Shown: positions 2,922 through 51,408 of the stretch, piece after piece
Layout of the letters: each line of letters opens with the position of its first letter
Position numbering within the stretch: the stretch's first letter is position 1
Assembly: GCF_037042905.1 (NCBI RefSeq)
Contig: NC_087250.1
Coordinates: 992,001 to 1,056,000 of the forward strand
Reading direction: 5' to 3'
DNA from: Lytechinus pictus
Taxonomy: Eukaryota
DNA length: 64,000 nucleotides
The notes under the pieces: generated by a model
What the model saw: the letters and a program-made list of their open reading frames with translations, nothing else
What the model was told of the DNA's origin: nothing
Databases searched by the model: none
Program-made: the position numbers and the translations under genes

Positions 2922-3069
2922 ACTTTCAAACCTCAGGATAATGATTACAAGACCGTACGGGAGAAGGCTGCTTCACAAAGACGTGATGTAGAAAGAGCTT
3001 TGACTAGATTCATTGCAAAAACAGGAGATAATCAGACACTATTCCCTGGGGATAGTAATCTCTTCCCAT
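2922..3069 (+). CDS. TAF8: TAF8 coding exon 4 (TAF8_C region)
   Basis: CCAG acceptor, GTAAGT donor at 3070; DYKTVREKAASQRRDVERALTRFIAKTG is near-identical to the recalled vertebrate TAF8 motif. Confidence 0.95.
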
Positions 3070-4670
3070 GTAAGTAGATGGTATGATATTATTAACTGAT
3101 GATAGTAATCTCTTCCCATGTAAGTAGATGGTATGATATTATTAAGTGATGATAGTAATCTCTTCCCATGTAAGTAGATGGTATGATATTATTAAGTGAT
3201 GATAGTAATCTCTTTCCATGTAAGTAGATGGTATAATATTATTAAGTGATGATAGTAATCTCTTCCCATGTAAGTAGATGGTATGATATTATTAAGTGAT
3301 GATAGTAATCTCTTTCCATGTAAGTAGATGGTATGATATTATTAAGTGATGATAGTAATCTCTTTCCATGTAAGTAGATGGTATGATATTATTAACTGAT
3401 GATAGTAATCTCTTCCCATGTAAGTAGATAGTATGATATTATTAACTGATGATAGTAATCTCTTCCCATGTAAGTAGATAGTATGATATTATTAACTGAT
3501 GATAGTAATCTCTTCCCTTGTAAGTAGATGGTATGATATTATTAACTGATGATAGTAATCTCTTCCCATGTAAGTAGATGGTATGATATTATTAACTGAT
3601 GATAGTAATCTCTTCCCATGTAAGTAGATAGTATGATATTATTAACTGATGATAGTAATCTCTTTCCATGTAAGTAGATGGTATGATATTATTAACTGAT
3701 GATAGTAATCTCTTCCCATGTAAGTAGATAGTATGATATTATTAACTGATGATAGTAATCTCTTCCCATGTAAGTAGATGGTATGATATTATTAACTGAT
3801 GATAGTAATCTCTTCCCATGTAAGTAGATGGTATGATATTATTAACTGATGATAGTAATCTCTTCCCATGTAAGTAGATAGTATGATATTATTAACTGAT
3901 GATAGTAATCTCTTTCCATGTAAGTAGATGGTATGATATTATTAACTGATGATAGTAATCTCTTTCCATGTAAGTAGATGGTATGATATTATTAACTGAT
4001 GATAGTAATCTCTTTCCATGTAAGTAGATGGTATGATATTATTAACTGATGATAGTAATCTCTTTCCATGTAAGTAGATGGTATGATATTATTAACTGAT
4101 GATAGTAATCTCTTCCCATGTAAGTAGATGGAATGATATTATTAACTGATGATAGTAATCTCTTCCCATGTAAGTAGATGGAATGATATTATTAACTGAT
4201 GATAGTAATCTCTTCCCATGTAAGTAGATGGTATAATTTTATTAACTGATGATAGTAATCTCTTTCCATGTAAGTAGATGGTATGATATTATTAACTGAT
4301 GATAGTAATCTCTTTCCATGTAAGTAGATGGTATAATATTATTAACTGATGATAGTAATCTCTTTCCATGTAAGTAGATGGTATGATATTATTAACTGAT
4401 GATAGTAATCTCTTTCCATGTAAGTAGATAGTATGATATTATTAACTGATGATAGTAATCTCTTCCCATGTAAGTATATGGTATAATATTATTAACTGAT
4501 GATAGTAATCTCTTTCCATGTAAGTAGATGGTATAATATTATTAACTGATGATAGTAATCTCTTTCCATGTAAGTAGATGGTATGATATTATCAACTGAT
4601 GATAGTAATCTCTTTCCATGTATTAAAGTAGATGGCATGATATTATTAATCGACTATAGTAATCTCTTCC
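3051..4670 (+). repeat. 50-bp minisatellite (~32 copies) spanning the TAF8 exon 4/intron boundary
   Basis: Unit gatagtaatctcttcccatgtaagtagatggtatgatattattaactgat repeated with a 50-nt period, decaying after ~4620. Confidence 0.97.
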
Positions 4671-5320
4671 CTTTCAAATCAATGGCATGACAATATCGAC
4701 TGGGATATACTATTAACTGGTCAATAGTAACCTCTTTCCATATACATAGATGTTTGATATTATTGACTGGTATGTACTATTAACCGGGGATAGTAAACTA
4801 GAAAATACAAAACTCATGATGATATTTTATTGATATTTGTCAAACATTTATTAAACTTGATATAAATACCAAATTTTTCTCAGAGTGAACTTCTCCTTTA
4901 ATGCTGTAGGAAAGTAGTTGCAGCAAGCAATGAATACATGAGAAAGTCTTTAAAATCAAGGTTTATTGTCACCATAGATCTGAGTATTGTTTATTTACAT
5001 AAATCTATATCTGTGAAATCAAGAAATCTATTTCAGCTCAAAACATTCAAACTGAAGATGACCAACACAGATATACACATGTGGGACAGTATAATTCTAT
5101 TCCATAGAAAAGGGAATGCCATGCTTCTTTTGCTAATTTCACAGCAATTCCTCAAATCTTCCATAATCCTTTGGCACATATTCTTTTATTTATACATACA
5201 GATTGGTGGTCATATTATTAGATACAGTACAAACCTCATCTTGAAATTATTTACAACTGGCATGTAAGTCTAATATATTCAAAACAAAATTATATTTTTA
5301 TTTGTTGTTTTTTGCTGCAG

Positions 5321-5604
5321 TGATAGCATGTACCCCTTCACCTGTACCGTACCTAGATGCTCTTATACCTCAGGAACATGATATCTTACAAGAAAGTGAT
5401 GATGAACAAACACAAGAGGGCGACATTAAATCAGCGGACGAGAGCGAGGAGAAGAGGGATTCCCAAGATACGGAAGGGAAGGTGAAAGGAGCGGAAGATG
5501 AGGGCGCTCAGTCGACACCGGCGAAGAGACGACATGATCCTGAGATCATTGATAATCCATTCCTAAGACAACCGAAACGGCCACGGTACAAGAAGAAGAA
5601 GTGA
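5321..5604 (+). CDS. TAF8: TAF8 last coding exon with C-terminal basic NLS
   Basis: TGCAG acceptor; IACTPSPVPYLDALIP...IIDNPFLRQPKRPRYKKKK then TGA. The five exons sum to 861 nt = 286 aa + stop, in frame. Confidence 0.92.
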
Positions 5605-5877
5605 TTGAGATGAACTCTATTCCTGTATAATATTCTGTTGTGCAGTCACATAGTTGACTGAACGACATATAAGTCAACCTGACTCAGAAAATTATTTCAG
5701 CTACTCGTAGTTGTACGATCGATTTTTATCTTTGGTAATCCTTTCCTATGACAACCACAGCTTTTTGGATCAAGAGAAAGTGACATGAGAAGAAGTTAGG
5801 TAATACATTTGAGGATTAGCTGTTCACTTATCGATGTAGCTAGTTCTTCTTCATGGATATACACTATACATTATTGT

Positions 5878-6140
5878 GGGGGGCGTCGTGGTCTAGTGGT
5901 TGTGTCTCTCAATCTGAGGGATGTGGGTTCCAGCCATGGCATGGTTTCCTTCAGCAAGATATTAACCCACTGTGCTGCACTCAACCCAGGTGAGGTGAAT
6001 TGGTACCCAGTAGGAAGACATTCCTCGAATGCTTGAGTGCCTAAATGGGCAGTGCAGCTAAAGCCGGGGTAATAATAGCAGCGCTTTGTATCCTCAGGCA
6101 AAAAGCGTTTTATAAATCTAGCTATTATTATTATTATAAT
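5878..6140 (+). mobile_element. tRNA-derived SINE with (TTA)n tail
   Basis: tRNA-like head with A-box (tggtctagtgg), body shared with copies at 24977-25253 and 27077-27305, (tta)n tail. Confidence 0.8.
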
Positions 6141-6619
6141 GAGGCTGGTTGTCCATGTAAAACACAGGAACTGAAAAACATGGTCATGTGCTAAAGCATT
6201 CTTATATGAATATCAAAAGTATGGGATCTAACGGTATCCATTGGTCCAAACTTTTGCATATACGAAAGAAAAAGTAGAATTTGAAGAAGTTTGTCCTGTT
6301 TTATCTGTTGATTATTGCTGATTGTCGATCTACAAGATCTGGTAATGTTAGGGGATGCTAGGGACTTTGGGATAGTGGATTGATTGTAAGAATGGGCCTT
6401 GCAGATTAAGGTCTGTGTTCCAGCAAGTTCTGGACTTGGGCCTGTTTCATAAAGATCAATGAATGTACTGTTCATGTTAAGTATTTAAAATAAACTGGGA
6501 GTCCCATTAATTCAAAACAATAGGCTGCAACAAGTCATTTCAATGCTGGTGATAAAAGCGCAAATCCATCTTTGGATGCTTTCTTTGTGAATTTGGGCTA
6601 CAAAGAATGTAACCATATT

Positions 6620-7053
6620 GGCCCGAATTCACAAAGGTGGTTTTGAAAACCCACGGTTGAGTCCATGGTTTATGCAGATTTCCTGTATAAATTACGCTTA
6701 ATTTAGCGCGTATCGGGCGCGTGTGTAAAAAATGTCCAATGCTGATGCGCGCTTTTGTCACAGTGCGCCAAATCGATGCCTGTTGCCGTGGATATCCACG
6801 CTATTTTATTCATGAGTCTACTGTTTTCATTAATGAGTCCACTCTTCAAACAGTGGACTCATAAATAAAATAGCATATCTAACCATGGTAACAGGCATCG
6901 ATTTGGCGCACTGTGACAAAAATGCCCATTAGCATTGGACATTTTTACACACGCGCCCGATGCGCGCTAAATTAAGCGTAATTTATACAGGAAATCTGCA
7001 TAAACCATGGACTCAACCGTGGGTTTTCAAAACCACCTTTGTGAATTCGGGCC
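6620..7053. mobile_element. Palindromic MITE with GGCCC termini and 3-bp ATT duplication (PIF/Harbinger-like)
   Basis: Almost wholly self-complementary (ggcccgaattcacaaagg...cctttgtgaattcgggcc); ATT at 6617-6619 and 7054-7056. Confidence 0.85.
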
Positions 7054-7481
7054 ATTGTGTTTAATCATGTGTCATCTGATAATTTGAACACTGATTATCA
7101 AGTAACAAATAAAACTTTGATGTCAATAACAGCAAAGCCTTAAATGATCTGTAGAAATCTGAATCCTGTGGAGAGATTTGAATGCATTAGATACGAGTAT
7201 GTCAGAGTGATAGCCAAGTGTTCCACAAAATGTATTTACATCAGAAACAATTGATTTTATTTTTTTTTCATTCTGCAAGTGATACCTCAATTTCATATTT
7301 AGCTGATAAATTTTAATAGAAGAAGCAGACTAGCAATCATTGGTTAGTTTGCAATTAATAACTTGATTGGTTGGTTGATTGATGGTTGGATGGATGGTTG
7401 GATATGATGGTGGACACTGAAGAAGAGGGAATAGAGAGATGACTGAAGAATAACCAAATACAAGAGGAAGGTGCAAGCAGA

Positions 7482-9636
7482 AAATGAGAGGGGAGGGGAG
7501 TGTATACAATAGAGAATGAGAGGGGAGGGGAGTGTATACAATAGAGAATGAGAGGGGAGGGGAGTGTATACAATAGAGAATGAGAGGGGAGGGGAGTGTA
7601 TACAATAGAGAATGAGAGGGGAGGGGAGTGTATACAATAGAGAATGAGAGGGGAGGGGAGTGTATACAATAGAGAATGAGAGGGAGGGGAGTGTATACAA
7701 TAGAGAATGAGAGGGGAGGGGAGTGTATACAATAGAGAATGAGAGGGGAGGGGAGTGTATACAATAGAGAATGAGAGGGGAGGGGAGTGTATACAATAGA
7801 GAATGAGAGGGGAGGGGAGTGTATACAATAGAGAATGAGAGGGGAGGGGAGTGTATACAATAGAGAATGAGAGGGGAGGGGAGTGTATACAATAGAGAAT
7901 GAGAGGGGAGGGGAGTGTATACAATAGAGAATGAGAGGGGAGGGGAGTGTATACAATAGAGAATGAGAGGGGAGGGGAGTGTATACAATAGAGAATGAGA
8001 GGGAGGGGAGTGTATACAATAGAGAATGAGAGGGGAGGGGAGTGTATACAATAGAGAATGAGAGGGGAGGGGAGTGTATACAATAGAGAATGAGAGGGGA
8101 GGGGAGTGTATACAATAGAGAATGAGAGGGAGGGGAGTGTATACAATAGAGAATGAGAGGGGAGGGGAGTGTATACAATAGAGAATGAGAGGGGAGGGGA
8201 GTGTATACAATAGAGAATGAGAGGGGAGGGGAGTGTATACAATAGAGAATGAGAGGGGAGGGGAGTGTATACAATAGAGAATGAGAGGGGAGGGGAGTGT
8301 ATACAATAGAGAATGAGAGGGGAGGGGAGTGTATACAATAGAGAATGAGAGGGGAGGGGAGTGTATACAATAGAGAATGAGAGGGGAGGGGAGTGTATAC
8401 AATAGAGAATGAGAGGGGAGGGGAGTGTATACAATAGAGAATGAGAGGGGAGGGGAGTGTATACAATAGAGAATGAGAGGGGAGGGGAGTGTATACAATA
8501 GAGAATGAGAGGGGAGGGGAGTGTATACAATAGAGAATGAGAGGGGAGGGGAGTGTATACAATAGAGAATGAGAGGGGAGGGGAGTGTATACAATAGAGA
8601 ATGAGAGGGGAGGGGAGTGTATACAATAGAGAATGAGAGGGGAGGGGAGTGTATACAATAGAGAATGAGAGGGGAGGGGAGTGTATACAATAGAGAATGA
8701 GAGGGGAGGGGAGTGTATACAATAGAGAATGAGAGGGGAGGGGAGTGTATACAATAGAGAATGAGAGGGGAGGGGAGTGTATACAATAGAGAATGAGAGG
8801 GGAGGGGAGTGTATACAATAGAGAATGAGAGGGGAGGGGAGTGTATACAATAGAGAATGAGAGGGGAGGGGAGTGTATACAATAGAGAATGAGAGGGAGG
8901 GGAGTGTATACAATAGAGAATGAGAGGGGAGGGGAGTGTATACAATAGAGAATGAGAGGGGAGGGGAGTGTATACAATAGAGAATGAGAGGGGAGGGGAG
9001 TGTATACAATAGAGAATGAGAGGGGAGGGGAGTGTATACAATAGAGAATGAGAGGGGAGGGGAGTGTATACAATAGAGAATGAGAGGGGAGGGGAGTGTA
9101 TACAATAGAGAATGAGAGGGGAGGGGAGTGTATACAATAGAGAATGAGAGGGGAGGGGAGTGTATACAATAGAGAATGAGAGGGGAGGGGAGTGTATACA
9201 ATAGAGAATGAGAGGGGAGGGGAGTGTATACAATAGAGAATGAGAGGGAGGGGAGTGTATACAATAGAGAATGAGAGGGGAGGGGAGTGTATACAATAGA
9301 GAATGAGAGGGGAGGGGAGTGTATACAATAGAGAATGAGAGGGGAGGGGAGTGTATACAATAGAGAATGAGAGGGAGGGGAGTGTATACAATAGAGAATG
9401 AGAGGGGAGGGGAGTGTATACAATAGAGAATGAGAGGGGAGGGGAGTGTATACAATAGAGAATGAGAGGGGAGGGGAGTGTATACAATAGAGAATGAGAG
9501 GGGAGGGGAGTGTATACAATAGAGAATGAGAGGGGAGGGGAGTGTATACAATAGAGAATGAGAGGGGAGGGGAGTGTATACAATAGAGAATGAGAGGGGA
9601 GGGGAGTGTATACAATAGAGAATGAGAGGGGAGGGG
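7482..9636 (+). repeat. 32-bp G-rich minisatellite, left part (~67 copies)
   Basis: Unit aatgagaggggaggggagtgtatacaatagag, with occasional 31-bp variants. Confidence 0.98.
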
Positions 9637-11106
9637 TGGTTTGCTGAACAAACCTTAAAATTATGAATTTGTCTTTTTCTTTCACATTTTTATTATATGT
9701 ATTTTCAAGGTTTAATTTGTCACTTTGGTGCTACCCTGAAGCTTTCGTAAGTAATGTAATTCTGCTCATGAATATGCATTTCGCAGATGCCACGTTGTTA
9801 GTTTGCAGAGAACAGGGAGAAGGGACGCTTGAAAATGAAATTATCTTATTTTACTTGATGTTGACTGGGAAATGCCGCCCAAGAAGTAAGTTTGATGACA
9901 GAAATGTTATATTTTTTGGAGGTGCTAAAAGCTAGAGATATTTTTCAGTGAATGAGCAGAAAAAGTGCATTAAAAATCGTATGCAGATACTTGAACTGTA
10001 ATGAACACGCAGTATGTGTAATGAACGCCATAGATATGTGTAATGTACAATCAGTGGATGTGAAATGAACGCGATTAGCTATGCACACTTAATTAGGAGG
10101 TTAGTTGTACTTTATGAGAAGAGTGAAGTTGTGAAACTAAATAAAAGCTTTTAATAGATTATTTCAAGAAAAGTAAAGTAGTATGAGTTAAAGGAAAATT
10201 AAGCTTATGAAATGAACAAAGGTGAATTTTAGGAGCTTGATGGGCACGAATCGTGCGTGTATGGGCGTGGTCTTTAAATTGCGTGATTTGTTTACATTTA
10301 ATTATATTCAGTCAGATATATTTGAGTAAACATTTATAAAGCACTTTAAGAATTTGTGCGTTTGTAACCAAAATAATTTTGACTTGTTAAGACAATTTTT
10401 GGTCAGAAGTTTTTCATACGAACGAGGCTTAATTATGTGCAAGGTCATGTCAGGGTCACTCGTTCCGTTTTTCGCACATTCAATTTTAGTGTGCAACCGC
10501 TAGCTAAAGAAAGCTTTCGGTCTATATTTTAGATTTTTCTGATAATGTCAAAATTGGGATAAATAATAATGAAACACCTTGGTAATTTATTTCTTACCGG
10601 ACTTATTTGGATATAAGCTGAAGTTAGCAGACAAGTTTGCTGTCTGTTTACCTTTTAAGGTAATTTTGTTCAGAATATAGAAATTACTAAGTGGGAACGC
10701 AAAGTTGATTTAAAGGTATATATTTAAGCAGTTCACTTTGATTTATTGCAAATATGTATGCATGTATTTAAGTTAGTCTTTTTCAAGACGTTAAAGAAAA
10801 TGGACAAATTTTAAACTGGTTTTTCTATCGAGGAAAACTCGGATATTTGTTTATATATATTCGTTCTATACACCTGATATGAATGATAATTAGATTTATA
10901 TTCCTTATTGTTTAAAAGAGATGACAATTTTGGGAATATTATGAAAACATTTATTTTTGTCAAAGCATTGGACATATATTTATGATCCACTTCGTTTTCT
11001 TATGTTTATACAGATTGAATAATACACGGTAGTGAGCCTGCCTAACTATCCAATTTAAAGCGGCTTTCCTAGCCTCTGTTATTTCGTAGTCTTCGACGAT
11101 CCATCA
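9637..11106 (+). repeat. BEL LTR (1470 bp, TG...CA), forward copy
   Basis: Starts TGGTTTGC exactly where the inverted copy abuts the PPT; ends ...CCATCA immediately before the PBS-like TGGCGCCCAA. Confidence 0.88.
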
Positions 11107-11180
11107 TGGCGCCCAATGTGGGGCACGAACCCACGACCCTGAGATTAAGAGTCTCATGCTCTACCGACTGAGCTAACCGG
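11107..11180 (-). tRNA. Retrocopy of mature tRNA-Lys(CTT), nt 3-76 including CCA; not a normal tRNA gene
   Basis: Minus strand reads CCGGTTAGCTCAGTCGGTAGAGCATGAGACTCTTAATCTCAGGGTCGTGGGTTCGTGCCCCACATTGGGCGCCA: cloverleaf, anticodon CTT, encoded CCA, T at position 58, first 2 nt missing. Confidence 0.95.
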
Positions 11181-12644
11181 ATCGTCGAAGACTACGAAAT
11201 AACAGAGGCTAGGAAAGCCGCTTTAAATTGGATAGTTAGGCAGGCTCACTACCGTGTATTATTCAATCTGTATAAACATAAGAAAACGAAGTGGATCATA
11301 AATATATGTCCAATGCTTTGACAAAAATAAATGTTTTCATAATATTCCCAAAATTGTCATCTCTTTTAAACAATAAGGAATATAAATCTAATTATCATTC
11401 ATATCAGGTGTATAGAACGAATATATATAAACAAATATCCGAGTTTTCCTCGATAGAAAAACCAGTTTAAAATTTGTCCATTTTCTTTAACGTCTTGAAA
11501 AAGACTAACTTAAATACATGCATACATATTTGCAATAAATCAAAGTGAACTGCTTAAATATATACCTTTAAATCAACTTTGCGTTCCCACTTAGTAATTT
11601 CTATATTCTGAACAAAATTACCTTAAAAGGTAAACAGACAGCAAACTTGTCTGCTAACTTCAGCTTATATCCAAATAAGTCCGGTAAGAAATAAATTACC
11701 AAGGTGTTTCATTATTATTTATCCCAATTTTGACATTATCAGAAAAATCTAAAATATAGACCGAAAGCTTTCTTTAGCTAGCGGTTGCACACTAAAATTG
11801 AATGTGCGAAAAACGGAACGAGTGACCCTGACATGACCTTGCACATAATTAAGCCTCGTTCGTATGAAAAACTTCTGACCAAAAATTGTCTTAACAAGTC
11901 AAAATTATTTTGGTTACAAACGCACAAATTCTTAAAGTGCTTTATAAATGTTTACTCAAATATATCTGACTGAATATAATTAAATGTAAACAAATCACGC
12001 AATTTAAAGACCACGCCCATACACGCACGATTCGTGCCCATCAAGCTCCTAAAATTCACCTTTGTTCATTTCATAAGCTTAATTTTCCTTTAACTCATAC
12101 TACTTTACTTTTCTTGAAATAATCTATTAAAAGCTTTTATTTAGTTTCACAACTTCACTCTTCTCATAAAGTACAACTAACCTCCTAATTAAGTGTGCAT
12201 AGCTAATCGCGTTCATTTCACATCCACTGATTGTACATTACACATATCTATGGCGTTCATTACACATACTGCGTGTTCATTACAGTTCAAGTATCTGCAT
12301 ACGATTTTTAATGCACTTTTTCTGCTCATTCACTGAAAAATATCTCTAGCTTTTAGCACCTCCAAAAAATATAACATTTCTGTCATCAAACTTACTTCTT
12401 GGGCGGCATTTCCCAGTCAACATCAAGTAAAATAAGATAATTTCATTTTCAAGCGTCCCTTCTCCCTGTTCTCTGCAAACTAACAACGTGGCATCTGCGA
12501 AATGCATATTCATGAGCAGAATTACATTACTTACGAAAGCTTCAGGGTAGCACCAAAGTGACAAATTAAACCTTGAAAATACATATAATAAAAATGTGAA
12601 AGAAAAAGACAAATTCATAATTTTAAGGTTTGTTCAGCAAACCA
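11179..12644 (-). repeat. BEL LTR, inverted copy (3' LTR of the minus-strand element), lacking the terminal 4 nt
   Basis: Reverse complement of 9637-11102, with no differences seen by eye. Confidence 0.92.
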
Positions 12645-12657
12645 TCCTCCCCCCGCC
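12645..12657 (-). promoter_or_regulatory. Polypurine tract of the BEL element
   Basis: Minus strand GGCGGGGGGAGGA directly precedes the LTR 5'-TG. Confidence 0.85.
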
Positions 12658-12910
12658 AACAGTAGCGGAAAAGAGCTAAAATTCTCCTGACTGAATGAAT
12701 TCTGTAATTATTATTTTATTTTATTTTTGTTTACAGACCAGATGAAAAATATTCAAGTTTTGCACCGACATAAAATTCAGGAGTATCAAAAGCAACTTTC
12801 TTTCAAAAATTCAAATTTTGCACCGACATAAAATTCAGGAGTATCACAAGCAACTTTCTTTCCTCAATGGCATTGAAAAACCAAAACACAATTTATGAAC
12901 TCCATATTGT

Positions 12911-15900
12911 CTACTCCTCATACCCTTCTGCCGGATATATTACAACAATCTTCGAAATCGGCCGCTTATAATCAGTACCTTTAGATTGTACTTTAACTGT
13001 TCGAACTTTCCCATCAGTCCCAGGATACACTTGGATAACTTTACCCAATGTCCACTTTCCTCGAACTGCATTAGGGTCAGAGAGTATAACCACGTCATCG
13101 ATTCGGACGTTCCTTCTGTCACTGTTCCATTTTCGTCGTGGCACCAGTAGTGGAAAGACGTCACGCATCCAACTCTTCCAGTACGCGTCGACGATTCGCT
13201 GGACAAACTCAAAGCGATGTCTCGGGTTCTTCGTCTCTCTGAAGGGTCCTTGAGGGACTGCGCTCGAAGATCTTCCAAGCAAAAGATCGTTTGGACACAG
13301 ATATGCTCCATCATCGGGATCATTCGGAGTTCTTCCGATAGGGCGCTGGTTGACGAGATTTGCGACCTCTTGGAGACATGTATGCAACTCAAAGGGTGTG
13401 ACCAGTTGATCCCCGACTGCTTTCTTCAAGGCGATCTTGCAACTTTTAACTAACGCTTCAGCACATCCATTGTGATGCGGTGCAGATGGAGTGGTGAACT
13501 TCCATGTCGTTCCTCTCTCGGCGCAGAAGTCCTTTAACTCCTCATAGCTCCAACCTCTCACCATCTCCCGTAACTCTCTTTCTGCCCCTACGAATTGTGT
13601 ACCGTTGTCACTTAGCAGTAATGCAGGCTGACCCCGCACAGCAAAGAATCTTCGTAGTACCTGCATGAACTCCATGGATGAGCAATCAACGGCCACTTCA
13701 AGATGTACCGCTCTTGTATTCAGGCAGGTGAAGAGGACCCCATAGTGCTTGGCGGTCTTGTTCCTTCCAACTTTGACTGATATCGGTCCAAAATAGTCGA
13801 CAGATGAGAAGTGAAACGGTGGTGTATATGGGGCAACTCTCTCATCTGGTAGATCAGACATGACTTGTGACTCAACCTGATGCTCCATGCGTCGGCAAAT
13901 CACACACCTATACTTTACAGTCTTAGCCAGTTTATGAATATTCAGGATCCAGTATTGACGTCGAACCTTCGCTGCAGTAGCTGCCACGCCTCCGTGTCCT
14001 AGCTGATGCATATGTCTCGTTATCAGCACTGATACCCAAGCTCCATGTGGCAGCAGAGCAGGGTGTTTGTGCTCATAAGAAATCAGAGCCTTGTCTAGTC
14101 GCCCTCCAACTCTGATAATTCCCTCGTTGTCTATAAAAGGGCTGAGAGTCTTGAATTCTCCACTCTGTACACGTTGATACAAGGAACTCTGGGCTTCCTT
14201 AATTAGAAAGTGTTCAGCTTTCTGCAACTGAGTTGTCGATAAGTTTCCATCTCCAAGATTGACATTAGACTTTGCCCGAAGTACAGCTTTGAGCTTGTCG
14301 ATGAACTTTAAAACATAAGCCGTTACTCGGATCAGTTTTTTCCAGCTGGAGAATCTCTTGACATCGATCACATCATTGTTCTTGACTGAGATATGATTAA
14401 CCCTTCGTCGTTCTGCTTCAATCTCAGTCTCTGCTTCTGGAATAGCCTTTTCTGACGGCCATTCCTCGTAAGATCTGTACAAGAACGCAGGTCCTTGTTT
14501 CCATCTTTCTGAGAGCTTCCTTACTGGCAGGCCCCTGGAGACGTCATCTGCTGGGTTCAGCTCTCCGGGAACATACTTCCATTGTGCAGGGTTGGTATAA
14601 CTTTGGATTTCTCCAATCCTTGCTGCGACGAATGGCTTAAATCTCCTACCCTCACTTCGAATCCAGGAGAGGGCAATCATGCTATCAGTCATGAAGATGA
14701 TCTTTTCAGGCTTCAGACTCAGTTCTTTCATCACTGTTGTGTAGACTCTTGAAGCCATTACTGCCGCCTGAAGTTCAAGTCTAGGCACAGTCATCTTTTT
14801 CAGGGGAGCAACTCGAGATTTGGCAACTACAAATCTAACAGCATATTTACCATTTTCCAGCTTCCACTGCAAATACACACAGACTCCAAATGCTACCTCA
14901 GATGCATCAGCAAATATGCACAGTGAAGGGTGACCAACAGCCATTGGTGGAGTCAGGCATCTCTCATATTTGATATCATTCAAGTCCTGCATCTCTTTCA
15001 TGAATGTCACCCACCACTCCTGTAGATCGGGAGGCAGAAGTTCATCCCAATCATATCCTCTTTGCCACAACTGCTGCATTCCAATCTTTGCACGAACTAG
15101 AAAGGGGGCAGCAAATCCTATCGGATCAAATATTCGTGCAATTCTACTCAGAATCTTCCTTTTGGTAAGTACACTCGATTCTTCTTTTCCATCATTAGGA
15201 AAACTGCTGACTGTGTCCTTCAGTTTGTAGAAGAACATATCTTGCTGGTTGTCCCATGCTATTCCCAGCACTTTGTCTTCCAAGGCGGCTTCGAGGATTT
15301 TTGTTTTACCTTCCTTCTTACTTTCTCCTCTCAAAGCTTCGTTGCTGGTCCAGCCTTTAACTTTAAAGCCACCTTCCAAAAGTACTTGATCAATTTCACT
15401 TGTCAGCTGCTCTGCTTCGCCTACATCTCTCACCGAGTCACATATGTCGTCCATGTAGACACTCTCCTTCAGTACCTGTGCTGCTTTCGGATATCTAGCC
15501 TCTGCTGCTTCTGCTGTCATCCTGAGTGCCAACTGGGCCATAGCTGGTGCTGGCTTGTCGCCAAATGTAACAACTTTCATAATGTAAACATCTGGCTTTT
15601 TATCAGTCTCCATATCTCGCCACAGGTACCGATGTACATTCATATCTCTCTCAGGAATTGAGACCCTGTGATACATCTTAGAAATGTCACCACAAAATCC
15701 TACTTCATTCATCCGGAATCTCAGCAATACTCCAAGCAGATCATTGAGAAGATCTGGACCCTTTAGCCAATAGTCATTTAAGCAATGACCCTGATATGAT
15801 GAAGACGAATTGAAGACGATGCGTACAGGGGTACTTCTCTTCTCAGGCCGGAGAACAGCGTGGTGGGAAATGTAGTGAACAGGACCCTCGTACTGAGCTA

Positions 15901-18052
15901 CTTCATTCTCTGTTAACTTTCGTGCAAATCCATTCTCTATCAGTTCCCTCATTTGTTTTCTATATGCATCTGCATGGTCTGGGTTTCGAGCTAGTCTTTT
16001 CTCAGTCGAACACAGTACCTTCTCTGCTTGTGCTCGATTGTTAGGAAGTAGGTTGGGATCCTTTCTCCATGGATAAGCAATCTCCCACTTGTTTCCAACC
16101 TTTCTACTAGACTCTCTGATAATCTGCTCCTCAACCTTCTCCTGCTTGCTCAAAGGGCTTGGCTCACAATGGCAGGAACTAGACTGCACCCCCATAGATT
16201 CTGAGCTCCAGAAATCGGTCAAGTCAATTGGGGATGTCAACTTCACATGCAGCACATTCATCCTATCATTCCTTCTTTTGGGAGCACCAAAGATGACCCA
16301 GCCCAGTGGGGATTTTCGGGCTACTAACTGTCCCTTCTCTCTCGTTTCACCAAGATGCATCTTTGGGTAGTCAATACCTATGAGAAGATGAACTGACCCA
16401 CTTCCTCTGCGTAGATCCTCAGACTTCAGATTAAACTGCTTGGAAACTTCATTCATCTTCACTTGTGCAATATTTTCACTGATACAGGGTAATGCCACTG
16501 CTGCTAAAGAATGAATGGCATTGGTAGAGAGGGACCTCACTTTTATCTGATACTGTTTGGTTTCCATCTGCTCTTGCTCTCCACCAACCTTAGTGATTGT
16601 GATATTTATGTTGCTTCCCTTCAGATTCATCTCCTTAGCAACAGACATCTTGATGAGGCTTACTTGAGCTCCAGAGTCTAAGAGCACATTTCCCTTACAG
16701 ACTGCTCCTTGTTGCCCCAGGATCTCCGCTGTAACTACGGGTAACAGTGCCTCAGAGTTGCCCGCAAAGGCGACATCTACATTTCCACCTCGGACCTCTG
16801 TTGAAGCATGAAGGAGGGGGTGGTGGAAGTACTTGCATGGTTCTCCGGCAGTAGTTTCACTACATCGACGTTTCCGTTTACAGTTTGACATTCTGTGATC
16901 CTTACCAGCCTTCTTTAGACAGCTAAAACAGGCATGATGATCCTTGAGTAGCTTCAGTCTCTCGGATTGTGACATGGCTAAAAACTTACGACACTGATCA
17001 AGCCAATGTGATGATGTTTCACAGAGCCAGCATTTGTGAAATAACCTCTGGAATTTGTTTTCCTGGCTGGCTACTGTCTTCCCGACTAGATGTACACCAC
17101 TTGACTTCGAATCACTTCGGACTGGGGCCGAAGCTCTCATCCTTGACTTCAGTTCAACTGTAAGCCATGTCAGAAACATTTCAAAGCTTGCCTTGCCACT
17201 TGCCTCTTGATGCCTAAACCACACCAGTCGGTCTTCCGGGCTTAGCTTCCTTTCCATTATGGCAAGCATATGGCTATTGTTCAAATTTCCTGGCTGGTTG
17301 ATTTCCATGAGGGTATTGTAACTCCTCCGAACGAGATGCACAAACTCACAAAATCTTTCATCTTCTCCGCTTTTGAGTGGTTTGACTTTTGAGATGTCAT
17401 TGATTATAGCGTCGGCAACAAAGCGCTCATCTCCATATATCATGTCCAACTGTTCCCATGCTGCTTGGTAGTTATGCCCAATTCCTTTAATCAACTGCAA
17501 GGGTTTGCTCTGTAAACATGACCTCAGAATCATTAGGGCATCTCTATCCTCATACTGTCTGCCAACAGCATGTAAAAAATCTGCCTTGAAAATGCAGTAA
17601 TCACGGATGTTGCCATCAAAGGTGGGAAGTTTAGGCCTTTCCATCCTATAAACAGATCCTGACATTCTCCTTCCTGCTTCAGGAGGCTGATTTGTCTGTC
17701 TTGGTGACTGATCTTGCTGTTCATCTGCTGATAAAGTTGTTTCCATACTCTGATGGCTTGTCGATGCTCTAAGATGATGCTCTTGGAGCTGCTGTGCTTC
17801 TCTGTGGCTCTCATTATCTTTGCAATAGTCTCTTTCAAGGATCTGCAGCTTCAAAAATGAATTGTGGCACTCTTCCATCCACAACTCTTCTCTTTCAAAT
17901 TCCTCGTCATCCTCTAGCACTTCCGAATAACTGTCATGCTTATTTTGTAAATCCTCAAAAGCACCAGCATACTGTGCAAACGATTCCTGAACTTCTGGAA
18001 CAGGTCGCTCTCCATCGATCAAGCTCTGAAGGGCCTTTCCAAACCTGGACAA
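12911..18052 (-). CDS. BEL/Pao Gag-Pol polyprotein (Gag, 3 zinc knuckles, protease, RT, RNase H, integrase)
   Basis: KLPTFDG Gag motif; CWLC...H...C, CFSCL...H...C and C...C...HHPLLH knuckles; LLDSGA protease; YMDD RT; FADAS and PRLELQAA RNase H; H..GH...CVIC plus SDNGT integrase; BEL-type C-terminus (WTLGKVIQVYPGTDGKVRTV). The true start is probably ATG 18110 across a 1-nt frameshift. Confidence 0.96.
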   Translation of the reverse strand: MSRFGKALQSLIDGERPVPEVQESFAQYAGAFEDLQNKHDSYSEVLEDDEEFEREELWMEECHNSFLKLQILERDYCKDNESHREAQQLQEHHLRASTSHQSMETTLSADEQQDQSPRQTNQPPEAGRRMSGSVYRMERPKLPTFDGNIRDYCIFKADFLHAVGRQYEDRDALMILRSCLQSKPLQLIKGIGHNYQAAWEQLDMIYGDERFVADAIINDISKVKPLKSGEDERFCEFVHLVRRSYNTLMEINQPGNLNNSHMLAIMERKLSPEDRLVWFRHQEASGKASFEMFLTWLTVELKSRMRASAPVRSDSKSSGVHLVGKTVASQENKFQRLFHKCWLCETSSHWLDQCRKFLAMSQSERLKLLKDHHACFSCLKKAGKDHRMSNCKRKRRCSETTAGEPCKYFHHPLLHASTEVRGGNVDVAFAGNSEALLPVVTAEILGQQGAVCKGNVLLDSGAQVSLIKMSVAKEMNLKGSNINITITKVGGEQEQMETKQYQIKVRSLSTNAIHSLAAVALPCISENIAQVKMNEVSKQFNLKSEDLRRGSGSVHLLIGIDYPKMHLGETREKGQLVARKSPLGWVIFGAPKRRNDRMNVLHVKLTSPIDLTDFWSSESMGVQSSSCHCEPSPLSKQEKVEEQIIRESSRKVGNKWEIAYPWRKDPNLLPNNRAQAEKVLCSTEKRLARNPDHADAYRKQMRELIENGFARKLTENEVAQYEGPVHYISHHAVLRPEKRSTPVRIVFNSSSSYQGHCLNDYWLKGPDLLNDLLGVLLRFRMNEVGFCGDISKMYHRVSIPERDMNVHRYLWRDMETDKKPDVYIMKVVTFGDKPAPAMAQLALRMTAEAAEARYPKAAQVLKESVYMDDICDSVRDVGEAEQLTSEIDQVLLEGGFKVKGWTSNEALRGESKKEGKTKILEAALEDKVLGIAWDNQQDMFFYKLKDTVSSFPNDGKEESSVLTKRKILSRIARIFDPIGFAAPFLVRAKIGMQQLWQRGYDWDELLPPDLQEWWVTFMKEMQDLNDIKYERCLTPPMAVGHPSLCIFADASEVAFGVCVYLQWKLENGKYAVRFVVAKSRVAPLKKMTVPRLELQAAVMASRVYTTVMKELSLKPEKIIFMTDSMIALSWIRSEGRRFKPFVAARIGEIQSYTNPAQWKYVPGELNPADDVSRGLPVRKLSERWKQGPAFLYRSYEEWPSEKAIPEAETEIEAERRRVNHISVKNNDVIDVKRFSSWKKLIRVTAYVLKFIDKLKAVLRAKSNVNLGDGNLSTTQLQKAEHFLIKEAQSSLYQRVQSGEFKTLSPFIDNEGIIRVGGRLDKALISYEHKHPALLPHGAWVSVLITRHMHQLGHGGVAATAAKVRRQYWILNIHKLAKTVKYRCVICRRMEHQVESQVMSDLPDERVAPYTPPFHFSSVDYFGPISVKVGRNKTAKHYGVLFTCLNTRAVHLEVAVDCSSMEFMQVLRRFFAVRGQPALLLSDNGTQFVGAERELREMVRGWSYEELKDFCAERGTTWKFTTPSAPHHNGCAEALVKSCKIALKKAVGDQLVTPFELHTCLQEVANLVNQRPIGRTPNDPDDGAYLCPNDLLLGRSSSAVPQGPFRETKNPRHRFEFVQRIVDAYWKSWMRDVFPLLVPRRKWNSDRRNVRIDDVVILSDPNAVRGKWTLGKVIQVYPGTDGKVRTVKVQSKGTDYKRPISKIVVIYPAEGYEE

Positions 18053-18213
18053 CTTGGCTTTTGCCCCTCTCCGCTGCAGGCGCAGATTTCTTAACCTTCT
18101 CGGCTGACATATTTCTTAAAGACTTCTGATCCCTGATGTAAAGAGTCGTCAGATCCAGACAGCAGACTACTTGTGGTGACCATCAGACCTCTTCCCAGAT
18201 GAAAGAAATTGAA

Positions 18214-19956
18214 TTGCACAGTATGCTGGTGCTTTTGAGGATTTACAAAATAAGCATGACAGTTATTCGGAAGTGCTAGAGGATGACGAGGAATTTGAAA
18301 GAGAAGAGTTGTGGATGGAAGAGTGCCACAATTCATTTTTGAAGCTGCAGATCCTTGAAAGAGACTATTGCAAAGATAATGAGAGCCACAGAGAAGCACA
18401 GCAGCTCCAAGAGCATCATCTTAGAGCATCGACAAGCCATCAGAGTATGGAAACAACTTTATCAGCAGATGAACAGCAAGATCAGTCACCAAGACAGACA
18501 AATCAGCCTCCTGAAGCAGGAAGGAGAATGTCAGGATCTGTTTATAGGATGGAAAGGCCTAAACTTCCCACCTTTGATGGCAACATCCGTGATTACTGCA
18601 TTTTCAAGGCAGATTTTTTACATGCTGTTGGCAGACAGTATGAGGATAGAGATGCCCTAATGATTCTGAGGTCATGTTTACAGAGCAAACCCTTGCAGTT
18701 GATTAAAGGAATTGGGCATAACTACCAAGCAGCATGGGAACAGTTGGACATGATATATGGAGATGAGCGCTTTGTTGCCGACGCTATAATCAATGACATC
18801 TCAAAAGTCAAACCACTCAAAAGCGGAGAAGATGAAAGATTTTGTGAGTTTGTGCATCTCGTTCGGAGGAGTTACAATACCCTCATGGAAATCAACCAGC
18901 CAGGAAATTTGAACAATAGCCATATGCTTGCCATAATGGAAAGGAAGCTAAGCCCGGAAGACCGACTGGTGTGGTTTAGGCATCAAGAGGCAAGTGGCAA
19001 GGCAAGCTTTGAAATGTTTCTGACATGGCTTACAGTTGAACTGAAGTCAAGGATGAGAGCTTCGGCCCCAGTCCGAAGTGATTCGAAGTCAAGTGGTGTA
19101 CATCTAGTCGGGAAGACAGTAGCCAGCCAGGAAAACAAATTCCAGAGGTTATTTCACAAATGCTGGCTCTGTGAAACATCATCACATTGGCTTGATCAGT
19201 GTCGTAAGTTTTTAGCCATGTCACAATCCGAGAGACTGAAGCTACTCAAGGATCATCATGCCTGTTTTAGCTGTCTAAAGAAGGCTGGTAAGGATCACAG
19301 AATGTCAAACTGTAAACGGAAACGTCGATGTAGTGAAACTACTGCCGGAGAACCATGCAAGTACTTCCACCACCCCCTCCTTCATGCTTCAACAGAGGTC
19401 CGAGGTGGAAATGTAGATGTCGCCTTTGCGGGCAACTCTGAGGCACTGTTACCCGTAGTTACAGCGGAGATCCTGGGGCAACAAGGAGCAGTCTGTAAGG
19501 GAAATGTGCTCTTAGACTCTGGAGCTCAAGTAAGCCTCATCAAGATGTCTGTTGCTAAGGAGATGAATCTGAAGGGAAGCAACATAAATATCACAATCAC
19601 TAAGGTTGGTGGAGAGCAAGAGCAGATGGAAACCAAACAGTATCAGATAAAAGTGAGGTCCCTCTCTACCAATGCCATTCATTCTTTAGCAGCAGTGGCA
19701 TTACCCTGTATCAGTGAAAATATTGCACAAGTGAAGATGAATGAAGTTTCCAAGCAGTTTAATCTGAAGTCTGAGGATCTACGCAGAGGAAGTGGGTCAG
19801 TTCATCTTCTCATAGGTATTGACTACCCAAAGATGCATCTTGGTGAAACGAGAGAGAAGGGACAGTTAGTAGCCCGAAAATCCCCACTGGGCTGGGTCAT
19901 CTTTGGTGCTCCCAAAAGAAGGAATGATAGGATGAATGTGCTGCATGTGAAGTTGA
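18214..19956 (+). pseudogene. Inverted, truncated duplicate of the BEL gag-protease region
   Basis: Reverse complement of 16237-17979; the 579-aa ORF is identical to the minus-strand polyprotein until it runs into the minisatellite. Confidence 0.93.
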
Positions 19957-20660
19957 AGGGGAGGGGAGTGTATACAATAGAGAATGAGAGGGGAGGGGAG
20001 TGTATACAATAGAGAATGAGAGGGGAGGGGAGTGTATACAATAGAGAATGAGAGGGGAGGGGAGTGTATACAATAGAGAATGAGAGGGGAGGGGAGTGTA
20101 TACAATAGAGAATGAGAGGGGAGGGGAGTGTATACAATAGAGAATGAGAGGGGAGGGGAGTGTATACAATAGAGAATGAGAGGGGAGGGGAGTGTATACA
20201 ATAGAGAATGAGAGGGGAGGGGAGTGTATACAATAGAGAATGAGAGGGGAGGGGAGTGTATACAATAGAGAATGAGAGGGGAGGGGAGTGTATACAATAG
20301 AGAATGAGAGGGGAGGGGAGTGTATACAATAGAGAATGAGAGGGGAGGGGAGTGTATACAATAGAGAATGAGAGGGGAGGGGAGTGTATACAATAGAGAA
20401 TGAGAGGGGAGGGGAGTGTATACAATAGAGAATGAGAGGGGAGGGGAGTGTATACAATAGAGAATGAGAGGGGAGGGGAGTGTATACAATAGAGAATGAG
20501 AGGGGAGGGGAGTGTATACAATAGAGAATGAGAGGGGAGGGGAGTGTATACAATAGAGAATGAGAGGGGAGGGGAGTGTATACAATAGAGAATGAGAGGG
20601 GAGGGGAGTGTATACAATAGAGAATGAGAGGGAAGGGGAGTGTATACAATAGAGAATGAG
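19957..20660 (+). repeat. 32-bp G-rich minisatellite, right part (~22 copies)
   Basis: Same unit and orientation as 7482-9636. Confidence 0.98.
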
Positions 20661-22402
20661 AAGAAAACAGTGCAGAATGTGGGCCAGAGATGAGAGAGAG
20701 AAAAAATTAATACTGAGAACACAGTTATGTTCAAATGGGAGCTGAAATATTGAAATTTGAAAAGAGATTGAGTAAAAGAGGGATCATTAATAAATGTAAG
20801 TTTGAGATAAGGCACAATATAAGGGGTGAAGCTTTGTTAAAATATCAAAAAGTCACACGATGTAAAAAGGAACAGTATATGTTTGTTATATTATGACTTG
20901 ATGTGATGAAACAACTTATAGCAAAGATATTACCTCCTCTCATCTCATTCTCTTCTTTTGAATTTTCTACACCTCCCTCTCTTAAGATCCAAGCCCCTTT
21001 ATTTCCTAACTAATCTATACCTTTTATTTCCTTCAAAAGGAAAAAAAAAGAAAAGTAATAATGGTGGGCTGTCAAAAACCTCAAAGTTTCAAAGATAGCT
21101 TAGAATTTGGTTTTTAGATTTATGACATAGTAAACAACATCCTTTTGCATTATCCTTATGGTGATAAAAGGCTGCTAACAGCTTTTCGTAAGCTGTTTTC
21201 AAAACTTTTCAATTTTACGGCAAATCAAAATCATGTAGATCATACGTGTAAATTGTATTGCACATGGAATATATTGTTTTCAATAAACTTTCCTGAAACA
21301 TGCTGGGATAAGAAGTCACGCAGTAAAAAAAAAAAAAGAATCTTTTGCTTTGAGTTATCCATGGAATTTCAAAATACATTATACTCATACCCAATGAGAG
21401 AAACACAACAGTATTATTTATTCTTAATTTATTGAACATTTGGAGACAAAAATTAAAAAATGAATGTCAAACACATGTTGTAATATCCATTTCTACAAAA
21501 CGTTAATTATCTTGAATATGAAGTCATATAGTTCCCTGTGACATACAATCAATTGAGTGTATCGGTACTTCTATGGCAATGCATGTAAGAAAAGTTACAG
21601 TCAATTGCAACATTAATCATATCTTTTTATGTTACACCCCCCACCCACTAGACTTGAATAACCCCTTTTCAAATAGGCATGCATGTACAAACCATCAGAA
21701 ACATTTCAAATATACAAAACAAAATAAAGAGATTAGAATTACATAGGAATCAATAGCAAAACGGCATTGGTTAACTATATAAGAATGCAATCTATACATG
21801 CATGGATCCAGAGTTTGAATTTACAAAACGGGGTGTAAATTGGCACAAAAATTTTACAAACAAAAAATGTTTGAAAAAGTATTTAAAAAGATAATCGCTC
21901 CCAAATGAAAGCATTTTACAGGGACCGTCCTCTTTTTGCAGGGTAGGTGCCCACCTTCTGTGCAAACCTGGATCAGCACAAAAAATAATTACTATTGATT
22001 TATCACAAAGGAATAGAAAATTAGAAAAATAAACAAATGTACTATGAAATGAAATAAATTAACGTGACTAATATTCAAACTAAACATCAAAATAAATTTC
22101 ATGAAATGTGCCAGCTGTCAATACTCTAATTGCCAGTCAGCTATGACCTAGTGAAATTCAATTTTGTGATCGTCTGATTTAAAAGGACACACAACACAAC
22201 AACTGAAGGAAGCACTGAATTTACTACAAGATAAGATGAAATAATACCAACAGTCTTTTCACAAAGCTGTTTATATGACTTAACACAGAACCGCTGTCCC
22301 ATTGTTGTGCTAAATTGAGATTCTCAAATTCTTAACATGATGTGAGTGCTCTTCCTATAGCTCTAATCAAACCTTTAACATGCAGATTCAGATGCTTTTT
22401 AA

Positions 22403-28299: not shown

Positions 28300-28969
28300 C
28301 TGTGAAGGATAAAAAGAATTTATAAACTCAAATAATGCTAGGGTATATTTACAGATAAGGTGTGATGATAATAATTATGATGGTAATGATGTTAACAATG
28401 ATGATGTGTATGGTGGTGACAATGATGACCAAGATGATGATCATAATGATGCTGCTGCTGCTGATATTGATGATGATGGTGATGATGATGAATAACCTAC
28501 TTGAATTCAAGTCATTTGACACCCAAACCATTAGTATTATCTTCTGCTCTTTGAATTTGGAATATTACAACCTATTCTTACATTTTGAAATGCAGCTACA
28601 AGCTTACCAAACGTTTGCCAGAATGAATAACAAGTGCATATGCAGCCTTGATCCCAACTAATTCACCTCATTCATTATTAAAAGGTGAAAGGAATATGGT
28701 TCTCAGGAAAAAAAACCCCATTATACAAATTGAAATTGAATCTGTAAAGAGGCCTATAATATATTTATGAATTAATTTTGTTTAAGGCTACAGTTGCTTC
28801 TTCAATACATGAATAATAATACAATAAAAAAACACCACACAAATCAAAGATAAAATGTATACTTTCAAACACTTTTCTTTGTTATTACACCACCGATCAC
28901 TGAAGGTTTCAGGACAGTAAGATCAATTCAGAGTAATTCCCGGCTATGATTTGTATATCCATTTCTATC

Positions 28970-30860
28970 ATAGTTTCAAAGCTCTAAACATTATTTTAAA
29001 TCACTATCTTTTCACATACATAGTTTCAAAGCTCTATACATTATTTTAAATCACTATCTTTTCACATACATAGAACTTTTCAAAGCTCTATACATTATTT
29101 TAAATCACTATCTTTTCACATACATAGTTTCAAAGCTCTATACATTATTTTAAATCACTATCTTTTCACATACATAGTTTCAAAGCTCTATACATTATTT
29201 TAAATCACTATCTTTTCACATACATAGTTTCAAAGCTCTATACATTATTTTAAATCACTATCTTTTCACATACATAGTTTCAAAGCTCTATACATTATTT
29301 TAAATCACTATCTTTTCACATACATAGTTTCAAAGCTCTATACATTATTTTAAATCACTATCTTTTCACATACATAGTTTCAAAGCTCTATACATTATTT
29401 TAAATCACTATCTTTTCACATACATAGTTTCAAAGCTCTATACATTATTTTAAATCACTATCTTTTCACATACATAGTTTCAAAGCTCTATACATTATTT
29501 TAAATCACTATCTTTTCACATACATAGTTTCAAAGCTCTATACATTATTTTAAATCACTATCTTTTCACATACATAGTTTCAAAGCTCTATACATTAATT
29601 TAAATCACTATCTTTTCACATACATAGTTTCAAAGCTCTATACATTATTTTAAATCACTATCTTTTCACATACATAGTTTCAAAGCTCTATACATTATTT
29701 TAAATCACTATCTTTTCACATACATAGTTTCAAAGCTCTATACATCATTTTAAATCACTATCTTTTCACATACATAGTTTCAAAGCTCTATACATTATTT
29801 TAAATCACTATCTTTTCACATACATAGTTTCAAAGCTCTATACATTATTTTAAATCACTATCTTTTCACATACAGTTTCAAAGCTCTATACATTATTTTA
29901 AATCACTATCTTTTCACATACATAGTTTCAAAGCTCTATACATTATTTTAAATCACTATCTTTTCACATACATAGTTTCAAAGCTCTATACATTATTTTA
30001 AATCACTATCTTTTCACATACATAGTTTCAAAGCTCTATACATTATTTTAAATCACTATCTTTTCACATACATAGTTTCAAAGCTCTATACATTATTTTA
30101 AATCACTATCTTTTCACATACATAGTTTCAAAGCTCTATACATTATTTTAAATCACTATCTTTTCACATACATAGTTTCAAAGCTCTATATACATTATTT
30201 TAAATCACTATCTTTTCACATACATAGTTTCAAAGCTCTATACATTATTTTAAATCACTATCTTTTCACATACATAGTTTCAAAGCTCTATACATTATTT
30301 TAAATCACTATCTTTTCACATACATAGTTTCAAAGCTCTATATACATTATTTTAAATCACTATCTTTTCACATACATAGTTTCAAAGCTCTATACATTAT
30401 TTTAAATCACTATCTTTTCACATACATAGTTTCAAAGCTCTATACATTATTTTAAATCACTATCTTTTCACATACATAGTTTCAAAGCTCTATACATTAT
30501 TTTAAATCACTATCTTTTCACATACATAGTTTCAAAGCTCTATACATTATTTTAAATCACTATCTTTTCACATACATAGTTTCAAAGCTCTATACATTAT
30601 TTTAAATCACTATCTTTTCACATACATAGTTTCAAAGCTCTATACATTATTTTAAATCACTATCTTTTCACATACATAGTTTCAAAGCTCTATACATTAT
30701 TTTAAATCACTATCTTTTCACATACATAGTTTCAAAGCTCTATACATTATTTTAAATCACTATCTTTTCACATACATAGTTTCAAAGCTCTATACATTAT
30801 TTTAAATCACTATCTTTTCACATACATAGTTTCAAGGCTCTATATATTATTTTAAATTAT
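28970..30860 (+). repeat. 50-bp AT-rich minisatellite (~38 copies) in TMED intron 3
   Basis: Unit atagtttcaaagctctatacattattttaaatcactatcttttcacatac. Confidence 0.97.
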
Positions 30861-36145: not shown

Positions 36146-36611
36146 AAAAGCATTTTACAGGAATGAATTATTATATTGTATTTGTGCCTTTTTACATTGG
36201 TCAAATAAATATTACTACTACTACTACTATTACTACTACTACTACTACGACTACTACTACTACTACTANNNNNNNNNNNNNNNNNNNNNNNNNNNNNNNN
36301 NNNNNNNNNNNNNNNNNNNNNNNNNNNNNNNNNNNNNNNNNNNNNNNNNNNNNNNNNNNNNNNNNNNNNNNNNNNNNNNNNNNNNNNNNNNNNNNNNNNN
36401 NNNNNNNNNNNNNNNNNNNNNNNNNNNNNNNNNNNNNNNNNNNNNNNNNNNNNNNNNNNNNNNNNNNNNNNNNNNNNNNNNNNNNNNNNNNNNNNNNNNN
36501 NNNNNNNNNNNNNNNNNNNNNNNNNNNNNNNNNNNNNNNNNNNNNNNNNNNNNNNNNNNNNNNNNNNNNNNNNNNNNNNNNNNNNNNNNNNNNNNNNNNN
36601 NNNNNNNNNTA

Positions 36612-41963: not shown

Positions 41964-42334
41964 TATGGGGAACTTGGTCGCCCGCGCGAAGTGCTACAAT
42001 ACGCGCGACCGTGCGTGCGACCATGCCCCCCAGAAACCCTCCATACGTACGCAGAATCAGGATCCCAAGATCAGACGCATTCTCACGTTCAGCTCTCGAT
42101 CAGTACAGTACTACAGTCTACTACGTATACGTCCCTCAAGTTCACACGAGTCATCAGGTTCTACGACAAGTCTACTTACAAGTTCTACGACAAGCTCTAT
42201 ATACTTACAAGTCATCGAAGTCTTCATCCTCTGTAAGATTAAGACGGACTGACCCAGGATTAAGGTGAGTATATGGTTCTCGGCAATCCAGCTTACTTTA
42301 TTTAGGTTAACATCCATATAGTTAGTTTACTATA
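41964..42334 (+). repeat. Gypsy 5' LTR (TAT...ATA termini; contains an AAG/GTGAGT donor at 42264/42265)
   Basis: Direct repeat of 53842-54212. Confidence 0.93.
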
Positions 42335-42337
42335 TAT

Positions 42338-42347
42338 TGGCGCTGCG
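42338..42347 (+). promoter_or_regulatory. Primer binding site, tentatively tRNA-Ser type
   Basis: TGGCGCTGCG 3 nt after the LTR; complementary to a tRNA ending ...CGCAGCGCCA. Only about 10 nt can be matched. Confidence 0.6.
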
Positions 42348-47090: not shown

Positions 47091-47101
47091 CCAATTCTAA
47101 T

Positions 47102-51385: not shown

Positions 51386-51408
51386 CCCATTTCCTTTTCT
51401 CTTTTCAG

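Follow-up and report, generated by a model that had tools for sequence, protein, structure and literature searches.

How can two long terminal repeats (LTRs) of a retrotransposon come to lie inverted at one and the same end of it, with a copy of a transfer RNA (tRNA) between them? The question is raised by positions 9637–19956 of a 64,000-nt stretch of the Lytechinus pictus genome (hereafter the window; coordinates refer to it unless a locus is named), which hold a single BEL/Pao element of ~10.3 kb, sited within a satellite array and containing two perfect palindromes. We consider it probable that this insertion is the complementary DNA (cDNA) of a young L. pictus BEL/Pao element that reached a dead end when its second strand transfer failed and that was joined, in a one-off event, into a break of the satellite array.

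Anatomy of the insertion

The layout of the insertion, the positions of its junctions and the features of its tRNA copy are direct observations on the window sequence. From left to right the locus comprises:

7479–9636, no strand: left flank, 32-bp satellite (67.6 copies at 99% according to the program TRF), ending at a complete unit
9637–11103, plus: sense LTR copy, U3-R-U5, TG...CA, 99.1–99.7% identical to the LTRs of canonical copies L002–L007 and without mismatch to the inverted copy
11104–11106, plus: 3-nt spacer TCA, whose canonical place is between 5′ LTR and leader; expected only on cDNA ends or beside a 5′ LTR
11107–11180, minus: DNA copy of mature tRNA-Lys(CTT), nt 3–76 with CCA and T58, in the loop of palindrome 1, antisense on the plus strand (ARAGORN, Rfam and comparison with 122 genes)
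11179–12644, minus: inverted LTR copy without the terminal A of U5, 2 nt (GG) common with the tRNA copy
12645–12654, minus: polypurine tract, adjoining the LTR as in canonical copies
12911–18110, minus: BEL/Pao gag-pol gene; compared to the canonical product (1732 aa), a single-base indel shifts the frame once; otherwise open and without premature stop in the long frame
16237–17979, minus: template arm of palindrome 2, gag to protease, within the gag-pol gene
17980–18213, no strand: single-copy loop of palindrome 2, start of gag and leader, 234 nt
18111–18216, minus: leader up to the boundary with the missing 5′ LTR; the canonical match stops at 18216 (L002 position 9895), and 18205–18214 is the complement of the motif found at the primer-binding position
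18214–19956, plus: fold-back copy of gag to protease, ending inside the protease; its first 3 nt (TTG) are common with the canonical leader end
19957–20661, no strand: right flank, 32-bp satellite in the orientation of the left flank, restarting 10 nt back in the unit

Palindrome 1 is formed by 9637–11102 and 11179–12644, which are reverse complementary over 1466 nt without a mismatch and are separated by a 76-nt spacer. Palindrome 2 consists of 16237–17979 and 18214–19956 (1743 nt, 0 mismatches, 234-nt spacer). This comparison reproduced all coordinates and the whole anatomy given in a first-pass annotation of the window, including its impression that the arms look identical. An apparent 9-base extension of the left arm (9628–9636) matches at 6 of the 9 bases only and is a chance likeness of the purine-rich satellite to the polypurine tract. 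The true LTR start is 9637, the base that follows the polypurine tract in canonical copies, in agreement with the earlier placement of the sense LTR at the TG defined by this tract. The two runs of N in the window (36269–36609 and 55429–55562) are distant from the insertion.

The long open reading frame (ORF) on the minus strand (12911–18052) is 100% identical to an annotated L. pictus protein and contains the Pfam domains Peptidase_A17 (E 8e-50), DUF1759, DUF5641, RVT_1 and rve. Its Pao-type peptidase, reverse transcriptase, integrase and DUF1759 gag assign the element to BEL/Pao (Belpaoviridae), with 980 relatives of which the closest are in Lytechinus. The family was sampled through the members of its protein cluster, which led to eight copies in the L. 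pictus genome, namely the window copy (L008) and seven others. Six of the eight (L002–L007) have the canonical structure 5′ LTR-body-3′ LTR and share 98.7–99.7% identity with the window copy. Their LTRs measure 1466–1476 nt, beginning with TG and ending with CA, and three spacer nucleotides, TCA or ACA, separate every 5′ LTR from the leader. The family is young, because the LTRs within a copy differ by only 0–3 mismatches. Target duplications of 5 bp were found for five L. pictus copies and for a relative in L. variegatus (L009). Copies L002 and L006, otherwise canonical, are without this duplication, which may reflect recombination between copies.

Compared to a canonical Belpaoviridae provirus, the window element has the same proteins, LTRs and polypurine tract, at the identity given above, but has two inverted LTRs at one end and a partial inverted copy of gag to protease, and lacks both the 5′ LTR and the 5-bp duplication. 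The first-pass annotation had reported that both the 5′ LTR and the primer-binding site were absent upstream of gag. The 5′ LTR is indeed missing, whereas the sequence of the primer-binding position is present.

Both inner ends of the palindromes map within 0–3 nt of the U5/primer-binding boundary, as defined by the six canonical copies. On the left, the sense LTR is followed by TCA as in these copies and then directly by the tRNA copy. On the right, the antisense body, already described as ending at the leader, ends exactly at the 5′ LTR/leader boundary: its match to the canonical copies includes the first base of the leader and two of the spacer and breaks off after 18216. The fold-back arm starts at 18214, so that three nucleotides are common to both. 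A random breakpoint in the ~5.6-kb body would fall within 3 nt of the boundary about once in 1000. Two perfect kilobase palindromes with their inner ends at replication landmarks cannot be chance. The minus strand starts at the U5/primer-binding boundary, and the finished minus strand ends there before second strand transfer (PMC6088434). The inverted duplication of palindrome 2 starts at this predicted 3′ end, as expected for a minus strand that primed itself.

Read on the plus strand of the window, the order is a plus strand that begins at U3 nt 1 and extends as far as its template does, antisense tRNA, antisense LTR, polypurine tract, pol, gag and leader, and then sense gag to protease. This polarity, the one chosen in the first-pass annotation, is the only one in which every junction reads as 5′-to-3′ synthesis. 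The opposite strand is ruled out, as the tRNA would be there in sense orientation, for which no template exists.

The tRNA-Lys copy and the primer-binding position

ARAGORN identified a tRNA-Lys(CTT) at 11107–11182 on the minus strand, and the Rfam tRNA model matched it over model positions 1–71 with 52.6 bits (threshold 29 bits). The antisense tRNA copy that had been noticed between the LTRs is borne out by these searches, and its CCA and T58 point to a mature, modified tRNA as its source. The copy was compared column by column with 122 genomic tRNA-Lys-CTT genes from metagenome contigs, selected by a common 50-nt core. Position 58 is A in 121 of these 122 genes and T in the window, and positions 74–76 are random in the genes and CCA in the window. 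Positions 1–2 are GC in the genes and AT in the window, where they form part of the LTR arm. A covarying U7-A66 pair of the window copy is also present in a few genuine genes (an isodecoder). Because positions 1–2 belong to the LTR arm and positions 74–76 are CCA, the copy spans nt 3–76 of the mature tRNA and has 2 nt in common with the antisense U5. The latter is without its last base and without the spacer.

The CCA together with the changed position 58 would be marks of reverse transcription of a processed and modified tRNA. T58 would be the expected trace of read-through of 1-methyladenosine at this position (m1A58), the methylation of the L. pictus tRNA being putative. m1A58 is the normal stop of plus-strand strong-stop DNA, and the product of its read-through is unfit for transfer (PMC8599865). 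Both ends of such a DNA are present in the window, where the 5′ end coincides with the polypurine tract/U3 border and the 3′ end is extended by sequence antisense to mature tRNA from A76. Strong-stop DNA extended past m1A58, as described for retroviruses in vitro and in TRMT6-mutant cells (PMC8599865), is alike in its start at the polypurine tract/U3 border, its U3-R-U5 content, its antisense tRNA sequence beyond position 58 and the inability of the product to complete second strand transfer. The window differs in that the tRNA is copied from nt 76 to nt 3, is mismatched to the primer-binding position and lies in a chromosome.

The leader starts with the 10-nt motif ATTCAATTTC, which three divergent BEL/Pao families of sea urchins carry once per element, 3–4 nt downstream of the 5′ LTR (~9894–9906 in L002–L007, ~5889–5901 in L009, ~4510–4522 in L130, ~4954–4966 in L131 and, as the complement, 18205–18214 in the window). 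Families L130 and L131 share it at a like position despite only 56–57% protein identity. The motif, whose first bases are not TGG, occupies the position at which the primer-binding site has to lie. No pairing of the first 10–18 leader nt with the tRNA-Lys 3′ end was found by local alignment in the window and all canonical copies (duplex of only −6.7 kcal/mol), and there is no 12-nt match to this 3′ end with ≤2 mismatches anywhere in the four elements tested. The complement of the motif was found neither among 830 eukaryotic tRNA genes, tRNA 3′ ends included, nor in the LTRs or whole elements with G-U pairs allowed. The primers of Belpaoviridae listed by the International Committee on Taxonomy of Viruses (ICTV) are tRNA-Arg or tRNA-Gly. 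At the level of predicted pairing, the conserved motif shows that the primer of sea-urchin BEL/Pao elements would differ from the expected tRNA 3′ end.

Three candidate primers were rejected. tRNA-Lys, whose copy the first-pass annotation had taken for that of the primer, showed no complementarity to the leader, the conserved motif of the primer-binding position included, and a 9/10 likeness at LTR positions ~237–247 was judged to be chance. For self-priming of the Tf1 type, the best leader complement in the LTR reaches 11/12, shows no covariation in the L. variegatus relative, and no complement of the motif exists in the elements. A tRNA fragment as primer found its complement in 0 of the 830 eukaryotic tRNA genes. 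Rather than having served as the cognate primer, tRNA-Lys was probably copied after a template jump, in the best reading an end-to-end one that took synthesis from the run-off plus strand to the tRNA.

Probable origin and capture of the insertion

The left end of the insertion is U3 nt 1 and its right end lies inside the protease, where neither microhomology nor a nearby purine tract was found at the junction. There is no 5-bp target duplication: the satellite flanks overlap by 10 bp, and no variant of the unit could yield a duplication of 5 bp. With its LTRs inverted and adjacent, the insertion does not have the form of a canonical provirus made by integrase. Its junctions lack an integrase signature and it holds nucleotides present only in cDNA, as expected for capture by end joining, and this mode, rather than integrase, would fit the junction sequences. 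In yeast, replication intermediates of Ty1 are known to be captured at breaks (PMC11372161). The Ty1 insertions resemble that in the window by the missing integrase signature, the nucleotides found only on cDNA ends and the little or no junction homology. They are mostly short LTR fragments in experimental yeast cells, whereas the window carries a 10.3-kb insertion in an animal assembly with both hairpins kept.

From these features we infer how the events followed one another, which enzymes acted, why the transfer failed and how the product was captured. Plus-strand strong-stop DNA would have been synthesized from the first U3 base across R and U5 until it reached the 3-nt spacer, at which its minus-strand template has its 5′ end. 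Synthesis would have gone on along tRNA-Lys(CTT) from A76 to nt 3, past the putatively methylated A58, and no copy of the element's own primer-binding sequence would have been made. The end of the tRNA copy may have joined the antisense U5 via the 2 common nucleotides, and hence the whole minus strand (LTR, polypurine tract, pol, gag and leader). This strand would have stopped at the U5/primer-binding boundary, awaiting second strand transfer. The transfer, which needs complementary primer-binding sequences at both 3′ ends (PMC6088434), would have been blocked because the plus strand of the window carries no copy of motif ATTCAATTTC. The free 3′ end could then have folded back, paired over 3 nt with a complementary site 234 nt upstream and acted as its own primer for the copying of 1743 nt. 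Both strand ends would have been joined to chromosomal ends without integrase, and complementary fill-in would have unfolded the hairpins into two palindromes, an unfolding of the folded, dumbbell-like strand that we presume.

Self-priming of minus-strand DNA is a known dead end, suppressed by nucleocapsid protein, in which a free 3′ end likewise folds and is extended to give an inverted duplication (PMC6088434). It concerns short minus-strand strong-stop DNA with a stable hairpin, whereas the window would require a full-length minus strand folded on 3 nt around a 234-nt loop and extended over 1.7 kb. In L1 twin priming, too, an aberrant second priming during reverse transcription leaves an inverted segment in the insertion, but target DNA is the primer, the 5′ part of the element is inverted, and there is neither duplication of an arm nor a tRNA copy.

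Several points weigh against a dead-end cDNA. No favourable structure is predicted at the fold-back site (z = +1.2). tRNA-Lys is not complementary to the primer-binding position of the family and, because it is unpaired there, a template jump onto the tRNA is needed, itself an inferred step. The join between tRNA copy and minus strand needs ligation or strand displacement, which is unreadable from sequence. The only public copy reached, L008 (chromosome record CM073231.1 of GCA_037042905.1), is identical to the window over 11.7 kb and is hence the window's own assembly, so that support comes from one assembly. The zero divergence of the arms is expected for a recent event and equally for an artefact. 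A single locus gives no frequency.

The last points bear on an artefact of the library or the assembly, in which the true locus would have a canonical insertion or lack one and chimeric fold-back reads, or reads from extrachromosomal cDNA, would have been assembled into it. Chimeras from long-read sequencing or amplification classically take the form of perfect palindromes with short spacers, the arms show 100% identity, and the satellite array, hard to assemble, is seen in one assembly at this locus. Exact look-ups of junction-spanning ORFs gave no match, a result uninformative either way. Chimera breakpoints are random, yet both inner ends lie within 0–3 nt of replication landmarks. The loop of palindrome 1 appears to be a copy of a mature modified tRNA and not an adapter, the 234-nt loop of palindrome 2 is genuine element sequence, and the satellite flanks are collinear as for a true insertion. 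We regard an artefact as unlikely; it would at most explain the placement of the molecule, not the molecule. Rather less likely still is that the same dead-end cDNA arose in a cycle in which tRNA-Lys was the true minus-strand primer, the loop being the read-through copy of this primer. The copy does start at A76 and 3 nt beyond U5, the site expected for the first minus-strand base, and this is the geometry of a still-attached primer. This variant conflicts with the unpaired leader, with a motif conserved in three divergent families that does not start with TGG, and with the lack of 12-nt matches (≤2 mismatches) in the four elements tested.

Rearrangement of a normal provirus at the DNA level, through fold-back inversions by replication template switching or break repair in the satellite, is very improbable. 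Fold-back inverted duplications with short microhomology are known break-repair products (bioRxiv 10.1101/2024.03.07.583931), and the window junctions show 0–3 nt of microhomology. This explanation fails on the CCA-bearing T58 tRNA copy between the LTRs, on the LTR that runs from U3 nt 1 to the cDNA-specific spacer, on the exact replacement of the 5′ LTR and on the missing 5-bp duplication. Some retrotransposons target tRNA genes (PMC5006619), and a genomic tRNA-Lys gene might have been flanked by two independent, opposite insertions of such an element. We find this scarcely credible: no genomic DNA at all separates the tRNA from the LTRs, nt 1–2 are missing, CCA and T58 are present, target duplications are absent, and none of the fetched canonical copies adjoins a tRNA gene. 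Autointegration was rejected as the junctions are not LTR termini, a missed adapter as the loops are not adapters, and a tRNA-derived short interspersed nuclear element (SINE) on its sequence.

Recurrence in the family and meaning of the locus

The LTR-tRNA junction was found in one of the eight copies examined, that of the window. The first-pass annotation had also considered a recurrent hairpin-based route for this family; scoring of the LTR copies, with 6 of 8 canonical and mostly bearing 5-bp target duplications, lends it no support. From the copies compared, the family would leave traces of strand switching, and a hairpin propagation route is not supported. It is also quite improbable that a tRNA-capped, hairpin-closed (dumbbell-like) cDNA is a regular by-product or an alternative replicative form that repeatedly enters the germline without integrase, with the odd primer-binding sequence making transfer prone to failure and copy L001 as a second trace.

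Copy L001 (5896–6203, 9588–9895 and 15466–16445 of its locus) has ~550 nt of LTR replaced by a 78-nt inverted piece, made up of the leader start with its motif, the spacer and the terminal 53 nt of U5, with a 5-nt microhomology at one junction. Its locus also contains a perfect 3.7-kb tandem duplication (5221–8915 and 8913–12607). A 30-nt block of the window LTR (9866–9896) is identical to the LTR of L. variegatus L009 amid diverged flanks, and the breakpoint of the L001 rearrangement lies inside this block.

The whole window is rich in tandem repeats and transposons. A young retrotransposon of the Ty3/gypsy type occupies 41964–54141, with LTRs 100% identical over at least 300 nt, a gag with a zinc knuckle and a pol with a PHD finger after the integrase. 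Its third ORF (51409–52722) codes for a TatD-related DNase domain (E 4e-29). Two unrelated 50-bp satellite arrays are found at 3051–4671 and 28969–30857, with 32 and 38 copies, respectively, and 96–98% matches.

To our knowledge, the dead-end products of reverse transcription have hardly been seen outside test-tube reactions and engineered cells; they arise, for example, by read-through of the tRNA stop, by failed second strand transfer or by self-priming. The succession of LTR, spacer, CCA-bearing antisense tRNA and inverted LTR provides a search pattern for further fossils of this kind in long-read genomes. If its junctions are confirmed, the L. pictus insertion would be a natural, base-exact record of all three dead ends in one animal molecule that became chromosomal without integrase, a record that would include the misincorporation left by a modified tRNA base.

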